Assembly (NCBI GenBank): GCA_977016875.1
Contig: CDRNST010000051.1
Span: forward strand, 1,302,001-1,366,000
Length of the DNA stretch: 64,000 bases
Source of the DNA: Pavona decussata
Taxonomy: Eukaryota
Direction: 5' to 3'
Made by a program: the position numbers and the translations under genes
The notes under the pieces: model-generated
Told to the model about the DNA's origin: nothing
Database searches by the model: none
The model's input: only the letters and a program-made list of their open reading frames with translations
Shown here: positions 143 through 59,376 of the stretch, one piece after another
Layout of the letters: every line of letters begins with the position of its first letter
Position numbering within the stretch: position 1 is the first letter of the stretch

Positions 143-1356
143 GAGGAGATGACGTGGCTGGTACAGTGGTTCGTGTTTGGTACTCGGTGTGCATTTCAGA
201 AGAGGACTTTGCCTTTCTGACGTCAGCACTTCAAGACCTCGTGACTGCTACTGAACTGCGCACTCTAACAGGAGGTTTGATGGAGGTTTCTGCTGACCAA
301 CTGAGCCAGCTTAAGAGCGTTTGGACCACGTGGCTTCGCTTGTCACGGCGCAAAGGGTCATGGGTCGAGGAACTAAGACACAAGAAGAACTCCTTGGATT
401 CAGAATGGGAAGGTGGCGTAAGCCATTACATGCATGGTATTCCTAAGGAACACAGGATTTCTACCCAACACTTTTTTGACACAGGCATTTTTCATTCGTC
501 CACACAGACGGCAAAGTTATCGCGACAAAACTTTACTCTCACCGGTCAAGGAGATCTCCGTTTCAAAGTAAGCTCTGACTTTCACTACAGCATACCGTCC
601 ATTTTGCTTCCATTCACTAGGTGGGATTACAAAGCAATCAAGAAAACCGGCTGTTACGCTGCCTCCCTGCCAAAGATGTGCACCATCTACTTGATACAGA
701 TCCTTCAAAAGTGCCTCCAAAAACTTAGCAGTGAACGGGTGAAGTTCCACTTTATTTGATGTGACGTCTTGAATATTGAGGCCAGCCTGCCTGTCCATCT
801 CAAATATGACCGCATCACAACTTCTAACTTGTGGGACTCCTGTCCACTTACCATCTTACTGACAAAATTCAAAGGCTTCCTGAACGAATCTAATCCTCAC
901 GCGGTCATGTTGGCTGAGACCATCTGCTGGTCCCTAAACTATATGCCAGAATTAATTAACGTGTTGCCGCAGCTCTCTGGCATAGATCTGTGTAACAGAG
1001 CTTTGAAAGACACGGGAAACCACGAACTTACGCATTTATCCGGGCTGCCCGCGGTGGTGGAATACCTCAATTTAACAAGTCAATTTAACATGTTTCTACG
1101 TGCATCGTTGTTAGCTTCTTGCACAGACAAAGAGCTCGCTTCATTCAGAAGGAAGAAGAGAATCCCGTCTCTGAAATCGCTTGTATCTTCACTGGGACTT
1201 CATCTTCGGGACTTCGTTAGAAACGAGAACACTGTGTTTCCGTTTAAATGGGCGCTGAATTGTCGTCGGGTTGTAAAGTTGCGCGGATACGAGAGGGCGC
1301 TGGAATGGAAACTTGTGCGCGCTGACTCAGCAAAAGAAGAAGCTGCGAGTGAATAA
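143..1356 (+). pseudogene. g1: subfamily A MYND-DUF4470 gene, exon 2 only (exon 1 outside window), with an in-frame nonsense codon
   Basis: Acceptor TTTTTGTAG at 141-142. ORFs 82..759 and 769..1356 are in the same frame and align end to end with exon 2 of g9. TGA at 757-759 replaces TTA (Leu of FHFILCD) in paralogs. Confidence 0.85.
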
Positions 1357-2222
1357 AACTCAAATGAACCTCGAGTTGAACTTTCACAGCTAGCTCTATC
1401 CTTGTATAATCTCTGGACTGTCAACCAGAATTCTTTTCTTTTTGTTTCTGCAAAACGATAAAACGTTAAAAACAATTTCCTTTAGCATCCGAGCTCGCAA
1501 ATGAGCCCCTCCTAGATATACTGTGAATAGGCGCTTTGATGAACACAATTAGGTAACATTGAGGTAACATAGATGAGGTAACACAAAACACAACACAATG
1601 AGGTAACACAAAACTTGCTATAACACCTTGCCTTTGGTGCTTGGTCCGGGATAGGGAACTTTGAAGACAACAACAGCAACAACAACGGCAACATAACTAG
1701 AGACATAATCAGTCTGCATGATGCAATTCAATTTTTTAATTGAAAAAACTGAAATACCCTGACAGAATTCGACTGTTTATGCCAATCACGAGGCTCTTTT
1801 GTTTTGCAACCATTTGCAGTCAGAATCATTTGCGTTTTAGTTAGAATTAAGGTTAGGGGACACCTTGTGATGTCTATCATACACTAATTAGCGTGCGTCC
1901 GTTATCCATTTTCAGTGAAGCATACACAGAGCATGCACAAATCAGCTATTGTGTATGTTGTTTAGACTTATTCCGTTAAGTCTCTCCTGGTTTACTGGTC
2001 TGAAATTTTCTCGTATGATCACTGTTTCAGAGCTATTCCTATTCCTTGCAGTTAAATAACACTCGTTCCTTTTTGAAGTTATAACGCTGAAGGCCATGTT
2101 ACCTCGATACAAAATCTTCTTATTCCTGAAGTTTTCAGACAGTCTCAAACTCATGCGGTTGTTCGACATTGGTCTGAAACTTGGTATTCTATGATCAAAT
2201 TCACGAAGACTTCTAGTCCTAA

Positions 2223-2396
2223 ATAGGCCATTTCCGAGTTACTGTGAACCTCAGTATGAAAGCGAGGCTAAGTGCAAACTTTTCATATGAAAATGAGTTT
2301 TGTTTGCATACGGATGAAAACTAATTTTCATAACAAAAACTTTCCACTTAGCCTCGTTTTCATAATGAGGTTCAAAGCAACTCGGAAATAGTCTAT
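2223..2396. mobile_element. MITE with long imperfect terminal inverted repeats; internally deleted copy at 36758-36885
   Basis: ATAGGCCATTTCCGAGTTACTGTGAACCTC... at the left end is the reverse complement of ...GAGGTTCAAAGCAACTCGGAAATAGTCTAT at the right end. Confidence 0.65.
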
Positions 2397-55678: not shown

Positions 55679-57836
55679 TTAAAATCGAGGTCAAGTGACT
55701 AAAAAAAAAAAACGATCGCAATAAAGAAAAATGATAATGACATGGCTGCGGTATAAAATGATAACTTTTTCTTTCAAGCTGTAGTTACTCTAGTTTTACT
55801 CGTGTTGTTCTGGGACCATATTCACGTTGAAGCCAAAAAGAAACGGGACGACTATTAGTAAAGCTGGATAATGTACCTACCTGTTTCAGGCAATCCTTTC
55901 TAAACATACAGCTTGCTTATTTGGTCTTAGGGTCTGGTTCTGTGGAACACCTGTCCTTTAAACAACTTTGGCAACCAATTGAGGACGCCGTGCTACTCTT
56001 TGGATCAGCCGGCTTTACAGGAAAACTTACAGCAGGCCGGTTGCGCTTTGCAGATTCAAGGAAGTGATTTTATTCCCGATCCGAGTCCTTCCCTTTTCCT
56101 TAGTGTGCGCTTGTAAGCCGTTTCGCCTCCACACTCCTGTACGCACCGCTTATAAGAAAATTAGTAGGGAAATGATCGTTATTTATGTGGGATAAGATTA
56201 GCGCATTTTACTAGTCGTCCCAAGAGCAGTGTTGCCACGTCTAACCCGGAAATGACGTAAAGGATCAAGATTTCCGAGAAAGGAGAGGGAGTTTTGAGGA
56301 ACCGGGGCAATTGAACCCAGCAAACATGAAGTGTTCTCAAGCAGTATATTTCGGCACATAAACAGACACAAACCAACGGGCTGTGTCATGACACCCAAGC
56401 CCATTCGTTCTGAGAGCAAATTATTTCGCACGTGTACAGTACATTGGAGTATTAAAAATCTAAAACGTTTTCACGTCTGAAGTCCCTTCTCGGCCTCGGT
56501 ACAAGAGCCATGGCCCGTAAAATATTTTAATTCAAGAACCTGGCAAAGAAATTAATTACAAAATGTCTAAAAGGGAGTAGTTTTTATATTGTTAGAATAT
56601 TTCCGAAACACACCAACAGATGGAGACCGGGGTCGAAAGTGGTTGCAAGCCTCTTTAAATTATCGATTCGTTTGCAGCACACCTACATCCCTAATACAGC
56701 AGGTGGAAACCTTTGAATGTCCCTCATTTAAGTTTTCAGGCTATATGAATATTGAAGAAATCAAATTTTATGGTAATAATTTGACATTGTATTTCCGTTC
56801 AAACACTGTAATTTACTCCATGTTCAGTATTCTACTTTAAGGGGGCTTGTAGCAACCGTCTCATAGTTTCTATACCTTTTTTTTTTTTCATTTTTGTAAC
56901 AACACTGCAATGAGGAAGCCTTCTTCTATAAACGCTATCGTTTCTCCTTAAGCGTCCTCATCACTTTCTCATTAGTTTTAATTTTCTCTTTGTATTAGTT
57001 TTTTTGTAACTTGTGTGTGGTGAAATAAATAAGTAAACAAAAAAGGAGGGAGAAGTGACACCTTAATATAGCCACTACTTTCATTCGGACGGTACGAGAT
57101 GGAATATTTATACCGCGTTTACATAAGCCGTTTTATTCTCAGGCAGCCGCTCCGTTTCCCTTTTCCACGCTCACCACGCGCGCCCAATTAACGCAGGCTC
57201 ACGCAATAGTCGAACTTACCTACGAGAATATGAAAGGGACAATTAAACCGCAATTACATGACACTGGTATGTTTCACATCGGTGCGAGAATCTCGCTTCA
57301 GTACAGCTGCTGGGGTGAACAAACTAACCTCAGTATCTCGTGCAGACATCAGATTTGGACTGGCATTATGTAAACGACCTCGGAGCCGTGGGGAAACAGG
57401 ATGAGCTGGTACCGGTTTGAAAAATTTACCGATGCCAGGTAAACACTGCCTAGTTGAAGTTGAGAGCTAGGATATAGCAGAAAAAATGTTTTCTCTCTTA
57501 GCTACATTAAACGAACAAAATATCGATCGGAATTTTGGCAGGCTATGTTTCATAAGGCTATAAATTTTTTCATGAAATATTGGACGGAAATGGGACAATA
57601 GTTTGACAGCCTCCTGGGTCCATTCTTCACACCCGACCCCGCTTTAATAGCACTCAGTGACCTGAACTCATCCAGATCATGCGCACTGACGATAAGTTCG
57701 TGGAAACCAAGTTCTTCTCTAAGAAAAAAACAAATAAACATTTAAATTGTATTCTATAGCCACCCACCACCAGAAATCTTCATTATTGCCCATTGTCATT
57801 TCAAAAAAGACGCATAACGGCATTATAGGTTACAAA

Positions 57837-59376
57837 ATGCTCAAGAAAGATCAGTGTTGGCGCTGTGATACTATATGTGCAGCGCCGCCTGCAAAGATCT
57901 ACTGCGGCAGATGCGAAGTGGCGTATTACTGCAGCGATAAATGTAAGAGTAGCGATGAGTTTCGACATCAAGTGGATTGCCAGACGGCTTCGTTGAAGAG
58001 GAAATGTTCTGGATGCTGTAAAGAGGACACTGAATTAAAGCAGTGCGGTAGCTGTCTACAAGCTTGGTACTGCGATCAGATATGCCTAAAGAAATCCTGG
58101 TCAACACACAAACCCCACTGCCAACAGGTTTCAAAGAAAACCAGTGAACTGTCTGATCAACTAAAGGATGTCTTCGACTACAAGGAGTCCGCACAGTTGC
58201 AAGGAATGGCAACTGTTTATTACTGGGGTAACATTCCTGCTACGGATCTCATCAACCTTCCTCTGAACGAAGGCTGCGACTATTCCAAACCTTTGTCGGT
58301 TCTCGCTTGTGGCGTTGGAGACCCAAGGAATGTGGTGCTGTCCTTGGCTCAGCTTCAAGAAGCTTATCAAGAAGAGCTCACCTTTGTTTTGAACGACATT
58401 TGTGCCTGTACACTGGCGAGGACAGTTCTTATTCTGTACATGCTTTTGAAAGGTAAGCTTCTTTTATTATATCAGTTGCTGTCCTACTTTCGATTTGATC
58501 GACTATAATCGGCCATTAACAATTGATGAAAACAGTTTTGTGGACGCACGATGGTGTAGTTGTTCACGAACTGTGCCACAGATGAGTTCATGGTGTCGGA
58601 CAACAAACTTTTACTTCCGTCACATTATCTCTGTTCACTCACGTTCTTACATCCTTCAGTCATCTGTTCTTTCGTTCAGCGGATGGGACTACAAAGATGT
58701 CCGGTAGTGGGGCCACTCGTCATCAATCCTTAAGATGTACAGCGAGTATGTGAGTCACGTGCTTCAGAAATGCGCCTTAAAGTTGGCCAGCGGACAAGGC
58801 AAGTTCCCCTTCCTGTTGTGCAACTGTATGGAGCTCGCCCCATTCGTTCCTCCAGACCGGAAGTATGACCGGGTGACCACCTCAAACATTGCAGACTTTG
58901 TTCCGCTATCCAACATTCTGGACACTTTCAAGCCACTGCTAAATACCAATAACCCTTCCTCAGTTATCATAACCGAGTTTCTAAACTGGATTCAGTTCAC
59001 AACTTTGAAGACAGAAGCGATGGAGCGGGCCGAGTTCATGCCACGGGGCGACTGCTTTCGAAAAAAAGTTCTCGAAGACACCAAAGATCCTGCCATTTCC
59101 AGTTCTAGAGCTTTCCAAGGTTTTGTGGAGTACCACAACCATAGCGCTGAATTCATCCAGGTCCTCCGAGCATCTTTGCTGATCCCTGAAGTCCCGGATG
59201 AACGTAATCGCAGGCGCACATGGAAGTCAGTGGCTGACCATAATGGGCTGATTGCAAGAAATTTCGTTCGCTGCCAAAATCGAGTCTTCCCGGCCAGGTG
59301 GATGCTAAATTGCCGCAGAGTTACTATGATGAATGGCTTTGAAAGAGCCGTAGAGTAGATCGTCAAACCAAAGTGA
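57837..59376 (+). pseudogene. g12: subfamily B pseudogene (twin of g6); exon 1 57837-58452 is open
   Basis: Same deletion of the exon 2 acceptor and 5' half as g6. Shared nonsense codons at 58705 and 59356. It lacks the g6-specific frameshift and TGA. Confidence 0.9.

Follow-up and report, generated by a model that had tools for sequence, protein, structure and literature searches.

A coral tandem array of MYND-fused, DNAAF3-like genes with a predicted SAM-methyltransferase fold

The window analysed here is a 64,000-nucleotide stretch of the Pavona decussata genome (contig CDRNST010000051.1, positions 1,302,001 to 1,366,000), and it forms the middle part of a tandem array of genes that encode two MYND fingers followed by a DUF4470 domain. 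We read the array proteins, with a probability of roughly 0.6, as an old DNAAF3-like, MYND-fused family of S-adenosylmethionine (SAM)-dependent methyltransferases that has been amplified and has decayed in part. The fold itself has already been published for DNAAF3; what is new here is an uncharacterised, MYND-fused, non-ciliary branch of it that has been amplified to about 22 copies.

A single locus of expressed two-exon genes

Eleven gene-like two-exon copies and two exon-1 fragments lie in the window, in mixed orientation and in three subfamilies (A, B and C), as located by tblastn with the intact exons and by motif, splice and frame scans. The initial annotation had counted about 13 copies in three subfamilies, with four intact and the rest broken, and both counts stand, since the frame check leaves copies 5, 8, 9 and 11 intact. 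The DNA is eukaryotic, with a GC content of about 40%, and its nearest named proteins come from stony corals; an Rfam search of the window returned no match. When the flanks were mapped in the same way, the whole array came to about 146 kb and about 22 copies, roughly 9–11 of which look intact. About half of the array copies are thus dead. A six-frame search with exon 2 across the whole 602 Mb assembly gave 24 matches, all on the same contig (C51) between 1,285,929 and 1,431,689, making the array the sole locus of the MYND-DUF4470 family in this genome. A transposon-borne gene family was ruled out because the copies all sit at one locus.

Every copy in the array is built alike, with two exons and one phase-1 GT-AG intron inside DUF4470. 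Exon 1, of about 600 bases, opens with the ATG, takes in both MYND fingers, reaches into DUF4470 and closes with a ..AAAG/GT donor, while exon 2, of about 1.2 kb, is preceded by a pyrimidine-rich tract and AG. In exon 2, subfamilies A and C are about 43–45% identical, and B is about 38–39% identical to either (tblastn). The predicted proteins of copies 5, 8, 9 and 11 are 604, 594, 603 and 614 amino acids long, lengths that follow from exon lengths and phase alone. The genes are ordered B(-) C(-) A(+) B(+) .. A(-) B(+), a six-gene unit of about 37 kb that is present three times and is followed by one more A(-) B(+) pair; the third unit holds one additional B copy. The B copies within the window are all dead, and intact B copies sit just beyond it. 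Some copies stand head to head, namely 8(-) and 9(+), with 1.5 kb between them (32176–33661), and also 5/6 and 11/12, an arrangement that suggests shared bidirectional control regions.

RNA runs labelled coral metagenome contain window sequence. Expression was followed by aligning RNA contigs from four runs, belonging to three studies, to positions 29745–35740. The exons of copies 8 and 9 are covered at depths of tens to hundreds, and the two introns and a 1.2 kb spacer, which serve as an internal silent control, have cover at or near zero. In two runs from two studies the copy 8 intron is precisely removed, joining 30933/30934 to 31580/31581 (GT..AG, minus strand). A further GT..AG joint at 33516/33628 marks a 5' untranslated region (UTR) intron of copy 9, with a short 5' UTR exon ending at 33516. 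At the level of gene type, A and C genes are therefore transcribed and spliced as modelled. Exon-restricted contigs and an exact splice joint, together with the divergence between units described below, also speak against the possibility, raised in the initial annotation, that the copies are unexpressed or artefactual.

Domains, predicted fold and putative cofactor site

The tandem MYND and DUF4470 calls of the initial annotation were borne out by Pfam. In each exon 1 scanned, zf-MYND (PF01753) matched two stretches at 59.9–64.3 bits (cut-off 22.7 bits) and DUF4470 (PF14737) matched over profile positions 2–75 at 71.3–77.5 bits (cut-off 25 bits); spliced orthologues from Montipora and Oculina match the full profile, 2–97. 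A regular-expression scan found two complete C4-C2HC zinc ligand patterns in every open exon 1. Exon 2 alone matched no Pfam family, even at E 10, and neither a signal peptide nor, in Pfam scans, an immune-type or SET domain was found in the array proteins. The product of an intact gene is an intracellular protein of about 600 amino acids with two N-terminal MYND fingers, a long helix and one large domain, of which Pfam labels just the first ~95 residues, as DUF4470.

The fold was modelled on a Montipora orthologue (P0013; 605 amino acids, 64% identical to subfamily A), which stands in for the window proteins, using an alignment of 59 sequences. The AlphaFold2 model reached a predicted local distance difference test (pLDDT) of 92.5 and a predicted template-modelling score (pTM) of 0.92. 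It places strand 1 at residues 144–149, followed by a G-V-G-D-P-R-N loop and by strand 2 (172–178), with Asp178 as its last residue; next come some ten helices and a hairpin (181–391), and then strands 3–7. On this model, the large domain is predicted to adopt the class I, Rossmann-type seven-stranded fold of SAM methyltransferases, with a helical insert of about 180 residues after strand 2. The intron position corresponds to the helix after strand 2. Exon 1 thus codes for the fingers and for the start of the domain (strand 1, the Gly-rich loop, and strand 2 down to its final Asp), and exon 2 codes for the insert and strands 3–7, which would put the first half of the cofactor site on exon 1 and the rest of the fold on exon 2.

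An unbiased scan of 48,161 representative PDB chains returned class I SAM methyltransferases for about 48 of the top 50 matches, at Z-scores of 10.3–8.4 (rank 50 = 8.4), with 165–217 residues aligned across model residues 100–600. A structural aligner run on Foldseek candidates likewise gave methyltransferases at Z 9–10.5, over about 200 residues spanning 110–590. In the ESM Atlas, fungal MYND-DUF4470 clusters matched with a template-modelling score (TM) of 0.71 over 437 residues, and the DNAAF3 cluster with a TM of 0.69 over 366 residues (model residues 119–587). The likeness to NTM1/NRMT1, NNMT and the cap guanine-N7 methyltransferase covers the seven-stranded core (about 190–205 residues, Z 9–10) with the cofactor motifs in place. 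The array family differs from these class I enzymes in sequence, with less than 15% identity, and in its ~180-residue insert after strand 2.

Residues of the putative cofactor site were counted over 45–59 family members, in the numbering of the Montipora protein. In the Gly loop, position 150 is G or A in 44 of 46 members, G152 is kept in 43 of 46 and R155 in 43 of 45. Asp178, at the end of strand 2, is present in 44 of 45, and residue 403, after strand 3, is D, N or E in 54 of 59. Five further residues of the insert and core are invariant (S211, N326, W357, R419 and N446). Within the window, every exon 1 carries the G-x-G-D-x-R-N loop and the N-D pair (177–178). No Pfam methyltransferase model scored above threshold for the array family; a Methyltransf_31 match was seen in one family member (E 0.006).

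Relation to DNAAF3 and the proposed reaction

In humans, DNAAF3 is a disease gene for primary ciliary dyskinesia. Its protein was described by Sakato-Antoku et al. 2024 (PMC10835030) as a structural orthologue of SAM-dependent methyltransferases, with a Gly-rich loop, an acidic residue and an insert after strand 2; the same work links it to dynein heavy-chain methylation, which is lost in the pf22 mutant. MYND is not mentioned in that paper (PMC10835030). The initial annotation had proposed a SAM-using fold for the DUF4470 region, and our model and PDB scan agree with the published assignment for DNAAF3 (PMC10835030). The array proteins resemble DNAAF3/PF22 in the N-terminal DUF4470 match, the class I core, the Gly loop, the acidic residue, and the helical subdomain and beta hairpin after strand 2. 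DNAAF3 differs in that it lacks MYND fingers, has a disordered tail and is encoded by a single-copy, multi-exon gene. The DUF4471 domain (PF14740) is absent from all copies of exon 2 and from 59 family members, even at E <= 1 to 10, and the genome has its own DNAAF3 gene at C233:5155300-5162378 (+), in which a DUF4470 exon is followed by five or six DUF4471 exons. By these sequence comparisons, the array genes are not orthologues of DNAAF3, and they do not appear to be stable one-to-one orthologues of an already characterised family, an outcome that would have spoken against the initial annotation. Two more DUF4470 genes lie off the array, on contigs C120 (2007–2861 (-) of the excerpt) and C78 (1803–2711 (-) of the excerpt); in both, a single exon holds the whole DUF4470 but no MYND finger, and some of the family motifs are kept.

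When the non-MYND part of the Montipora orthologue was searched exhaustively with HMMER against 1.84 billion representatives, only 521 clusters were returned at E <= 0.001. Named members come from stony corals (Montipora, Oculina, Desmophyllum), sea anemones (Actinia, Nematostella), hemichordates (Ptychodera, Saccoglossus, Glandiceps), echinoderms (Acanthaster, Amphiura, Antedon, Apostichopus, Holothuria), amphioxus and the fungi Zymoseptoria and Mycena. Acropora, Pocillopora and Stylophora had no entries in the word-search lists, which do not prove absence. Uncharacterised MYND/DUF4470 proteins such as Nematostella A7SIP0 and Zymoseptoria F9XP72 share the architecture at 27–44% identity over about 470 residues, and predicted structures of such proteins match at a TM of 0.71. 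Other species appear to have mostly one to a few copies, some of them in tandem, against 22 arrayed copies from three old subfamilies in the coral. Adjacent paralogues, judged by neighbouring locus numbers or common chromosomes, were seen in Oculina, Desmophyllum, hemichordates and sea cucumbers.

Trees built on the exon-2 region place A, B and C in strongly supported clades of their own, each with orthologues from other stony corals (Montipora, Oculina or Desmophyllum). The subfamilies therefore predate coral diversification, and only the rise in copy number within them is a species-level event. The array had been described as lineage-specific, a view that does not survive this range of members, the A/B/C orthologues in other corals and the conserved gene order. 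Taken together, the sequence relationships indicate that the MYND-DUF4470 family is an old, widespread and uncharacterised paralogue of DNAAF3. In literature searches, DUF4470 came up in 4 papers, none of which treats the MYND-fused family, and nothing was found on an expansion of MYND or methyltransferase genes in corals. Dikarya, to which the fungi named above belong, have no cilia. Relatives in fungi without cilia make a dynein role for the array family unlikely; by the same token, dynein assembly was probably not the original job of the fold.

MYND fingers are protein-docking modules that bind PxLxP-type motifs. We propose that the array proteins would bind SAM through the conserved loop, Asp178 and Asp403 (Montipora numbering), that their fingers would dock on proline-rich motifs of a partner protein, and that the methyltransferase-fold domain would then methylate the docked partner, much as in SMYD proteins, which join MYND to SET. 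SAM binding, methyl transfer, a protein substrate and docking through the fingers are all inferences. The likeness to SMYD, a docking finger joined to a SAM-dependent methyltransferase domain, is one of design and not of membership: the SMYD catalytic domain is SET rather than Rossmann, the array proteins have no SET match, and the SMYD cluster matches the model at a TM of just 0.24–0.26.

Several points weigh against this reading. A Z-score of about 10 speaks for fold and not for function; catalysis and SAM binding by family members are predictions; the model is that of the Montipora orthologue, 64% identical to subfamily A; and the docking step draws on what is generally known of MYND fingers. 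A Foldseek search of the PDB returned no match at E <= 0.001, although its weak list was nearly all methyltransferases, and a phmmer search of PDB sequences with the non-MYND part found no solved relative. The RNA contigs are 95–99% identical to the window, and sister copies or related corals are therefore a possible source of them. Nor was direct in vitro activity of DNAAF3 itself found in PMC10835030.

The array proteins might instead be catalytically dead adaptors or assembly factors that retain a methyltransferase-like fold and use their fingers and cleft to hold client proteins, an explanation that we consider doubtful but worth weighing seriously. Pseudo-methyltransferases are common, DNAAF3 was long thought to be a client-holding assembly factor, and no in vitro activity is on record for any DUF4470 protein. 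Degenerate Gly loops are, moreover, tolerated among DNAAF3 orthologues (PMC10835030). In the MYND-fused family, however, about 95% of members, from fungi to corals, retain the Gly loop, the Asp that closes strand 2 and the acidic residue that follows strand 3. Together with the five invariant polar or aromatic residues, this is a pattern more in keeping with a conserved active site than with a scaffold.

The nature of the substrate is a separate matter. Among the top-scoring structures are the methyltransferases of nicotinamide, indolethylamine, thiopurine, histamine and phosphoethanolamine (Z 9.0–9.6); with small-molecule enzymes so placed, a protein substrate is not established. The family could on this basis methylate xenobiotics or metabolites at N, S or O, with the fingers serving only for localisation or regulation. 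We think this quite improbable, given that protein and RNA methyltransferases (NTM1/NRMT1, cap N7, Rickettsia PKMT) score equally well, that the only studied relative has been linked to protein Lys/Arg methylation, and that MYND fingers are generally known to dock on proteins.

The array family is the closest paralogue group of DNAAF3, whose methyltransferase activity is proposed, and its cofactor motifs are better preserved than those of some DNAAF3 orthologues. The intact coral copies are short, two-exon and expressed, and are thus suited to recombinant tests of SAM binding and substrate choice, for which the MYND fingers offer a direct handle on partner proteins.

Duplication, decay and selection

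In the reconstructed history, an old DNAAF3 paralogue split into A, B and C before stony corals diversified; the ~37 kb unit was then triplicated, after which about half of the copies decayed and the intact ones were kept by purifying selection. In self-alignment, 70–5861 matches 34714–39421 at 81–90%, and 13965–24636 matches 50576–61151 at 80–84%, then 96.5%, then 93.8%, and finally 98.8% over 6.9 kb. Synonymous divergence (dS) between units is 0.06–0.15 for most positional counterparts, 0.19–0.22 for the A(+) copies and 0.019 for the dead pair 6/12.

The order B(-) C(-) A(+) B(+) recurs in a related genome from ENA (91% protein identity), where an RVT_1 reverse-transcriptase element lies between A(+) and B(+); the element has no counterpart at the matching unit point in the window. 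The A copy of this genome differs from copy 9 by a dS of 0.144, compared with 0.185 and 0.223 between copy 9 and the other A(+) copies, and its C copy differs from those of the window by 0.10–0.13, compared with 0.06–0.12 among the latter. As divergence between the units is about that between the species, the triplication is about as old as the species split and not very recent, and the rapid turnover inferred in the initial annotation is not supported. Its other structural claims (nested duplication, a conversion-like mosaic and birth-and-death) fared better, being visible in the self-alignment and in the contrast between exons 1 and 2. Between copies 5 and 11, 5 of 600 exon-1 sites differ, against 40 of 1230 exon-2 sites (Fisher p = 0.001); exon 1 of copy 5 groups with copy 11, and its exon 2 with the third-unit copy. 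Such a mosaic is compatible with gene conversion or with a younger, superimposed duplication. The assembly may also have contributed to it, because the left edge of the 98.8% block falls at a gap in both copies.

That edge, and the presence of five gaps in the region, are what could be said for treating the copies as uncollapsed haplotypes or mis-scaffolded contigs. The gaps at 17019–17730 (copy 5) and 54024–54245 (copy 11) fall within the only intron of each gene, some 60 bases away from the exon-1 donor and 390–490 from the exon-2 acceptor; the flanking exons are complete, on the same strand and in compatible phase, and no reading frame spans the gap. Linkage of the two exons across each gap is assumed. 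At the gap 11948–12354, the adjacent exon-1 fragment already runs out into unrelated sequence, and the two gaps at 47394–47918 are intergenic. Long open reading frames running through N are artefacts. The repeat units themselves are 3–20% apart and differ in structure (a hAT insertion, deletions, distinct stops), grounds on which we rejected a haplotig artefact; the right edge of the 98.8% block is away from any gap, the same gene order occurs in a related genome assembly, and 49–65% of sampled words are present in independent runs. An origin of the copies in the assembly process is accordingly of almost negligible probability.

Across whole genes, the ratio of nonsynonymous to synonymous divergence (dN/dS) is 0.17–0.5 among intact copies and 0.5–0.77 where a pseudogene is involved, values that indicate purifying selection on the intact copies. 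Amino acid differences among the intact A copies cluster at exon-2 residues 91–165 and 256–300, two patches that map to the inserted subdomain and to the loops after strand 5. In 30-codon windows, the local ratio of nonsynonymous to synonymous differences (pN/pS) peaks at 1.0–1.2 in patch 256–300, where changes are few, and is <=0.72 elsewhere. Judged from these ratios, the patchy variation falls short of showing positive selection.

The immune, symbiont or detoxification role offered in the initial annotation would make the array a diversifying family of reader-enzymes for immunity or host-symbiont interplay, its copies tracking changing targets. Tandem amplification with about half of the copies pseudogenised, the two variable patches with their local pN/pS of 1.0–1.2, and the tandem paralogues of Oculina, Desmophyllum, hemichordates and sea cucumbers could all be taken in this sense. 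We nevertheless regard it as unsupported and unlikely, because the gene-wide ratios are low and no 30-codon stretch is clearly above 1, because subfamilies and gene order are conserved across corals, and because the proteins have neither a signal peptide nor an immune-type domain. A bolder version, in which the array consists of active MYND-targeted protein methyltransferases whose patches give each copy its own substrates, for use in stress, symbiosis or defence, is equally a long shot; if true, it would amount to a Rossmann-fold counterpart of the SMYD enzymes, diversified by birth and death. In coral genomics, the array can stand as a plain example of tandem amplification by whole units accompanied by decay, and can serve as a marker for assembly quality and copy-number variation.

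The intact genes of the window are all A or C copies. Copy 5 (A) has exon 2 at 15412–16628 (-) and exon 1, with two MYND fingers, the Gly-rich loop and strand 2, at 17790–18387 (-). Copy 8 (C) has exon 2 at 29745–30934 (-) and exon 1 at 31581–32175 (-), with an intron of about 646 bases between them. Copy 9 (A) has exon 1 at 33662–34256 (+), preceded by the 5' UTR intron at 33517–33627, and exon 2, with the variable patches at residues 91–165 and 256–300, at 34787–36003 (+). Copy 11 (A) has exon 2 at 52289–53535 (-), encoding a tail longer by 10 residues, and exon 1 at 54308–54905 (-). All exons of these four copies are intact. Copy 1 (A) is a pseudogene: its exon 2 (143–1356 (+)) is interrupted by an in-frame TGA at 757–759, and its exon 1 lies left of the window.

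The B copies have decayed in several ways. Copy 2 keeps an exon-1 remnant at 5268–5852 (+), whose 5' end is gone and whose first MYND finger is frameshifted near 5342–5360, and an open exon 2 at 9892–11057 (+). Exon 1 of copy 6 (21315–21934 (+)) carries an in-frame stop at 21606–21608, and its exon-2 remnant (22130–22837 (+)) has lost the first ~157 codons and has two in-frame stops. In copy 12, exon 1 is open (57837–58452 (+)) and the exon-2 remnant (58648–59358 (+)) has the 5' deletion and one stop in common with copy 6, which carries two more stops; the shared deletion and stop imply that the gene was already dead when the block duplicated. Copy 7 has an open exon 1 with two MYND fingers (27428–28043 (-)), and its exon 2 (25660–26573 (-)) is cut after residue ~280 by a deletion at 25765, so that the last ~120 codons are gone. 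Copy 10 has an open exon 1 (38794–39412 (+)) and a split exon 2: the first half (40366–40817 (+)) continues into unrelated sequence, with a stop at 40913, and the second half (42458–43198 (+)) follows 1.6 kb away. The insert between the halves (40817–42458) has no internal repeats and no long open reading frame. Of the two exon-1 fragments, the A-like one (12428–12691 (-)) covers residues ~96–182 only and lies 74 bases from the gap at 11948–12354, and the B-like one (13483–13617 (-)) covers residues ~166–210 only. The next copy, also B, contributes the 85 bases of its exon-2 3' end at 63916–64000 (-), cut by the right edge of the window.

Other insertions and repeats accompany the array. The intron of copy 2, about 4 kb long, holds what is probably a foldback-type insertion at 6531–9662, whose arms (6531–7383 and 8834–9662) are 99–100% complementary and separated by about 1.45 kb; the same intron has a (TGAT)n run at 7739–7827. 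A broken hAT-type transposase, not a member of the family, is inserted between copies 10 and 11 at 43904–46166 (-). It belongs to a decayed transposon in which a C17orf113-type zinc finger (44801–45904) and a hAT dimerisation region (44318–44734) occupy separate open frames. A degenerate tandem repeat with periods of 30 and 100 and 68–76% matches lies at 63173–63485, shortly beyond the 3' end of the next B copy.

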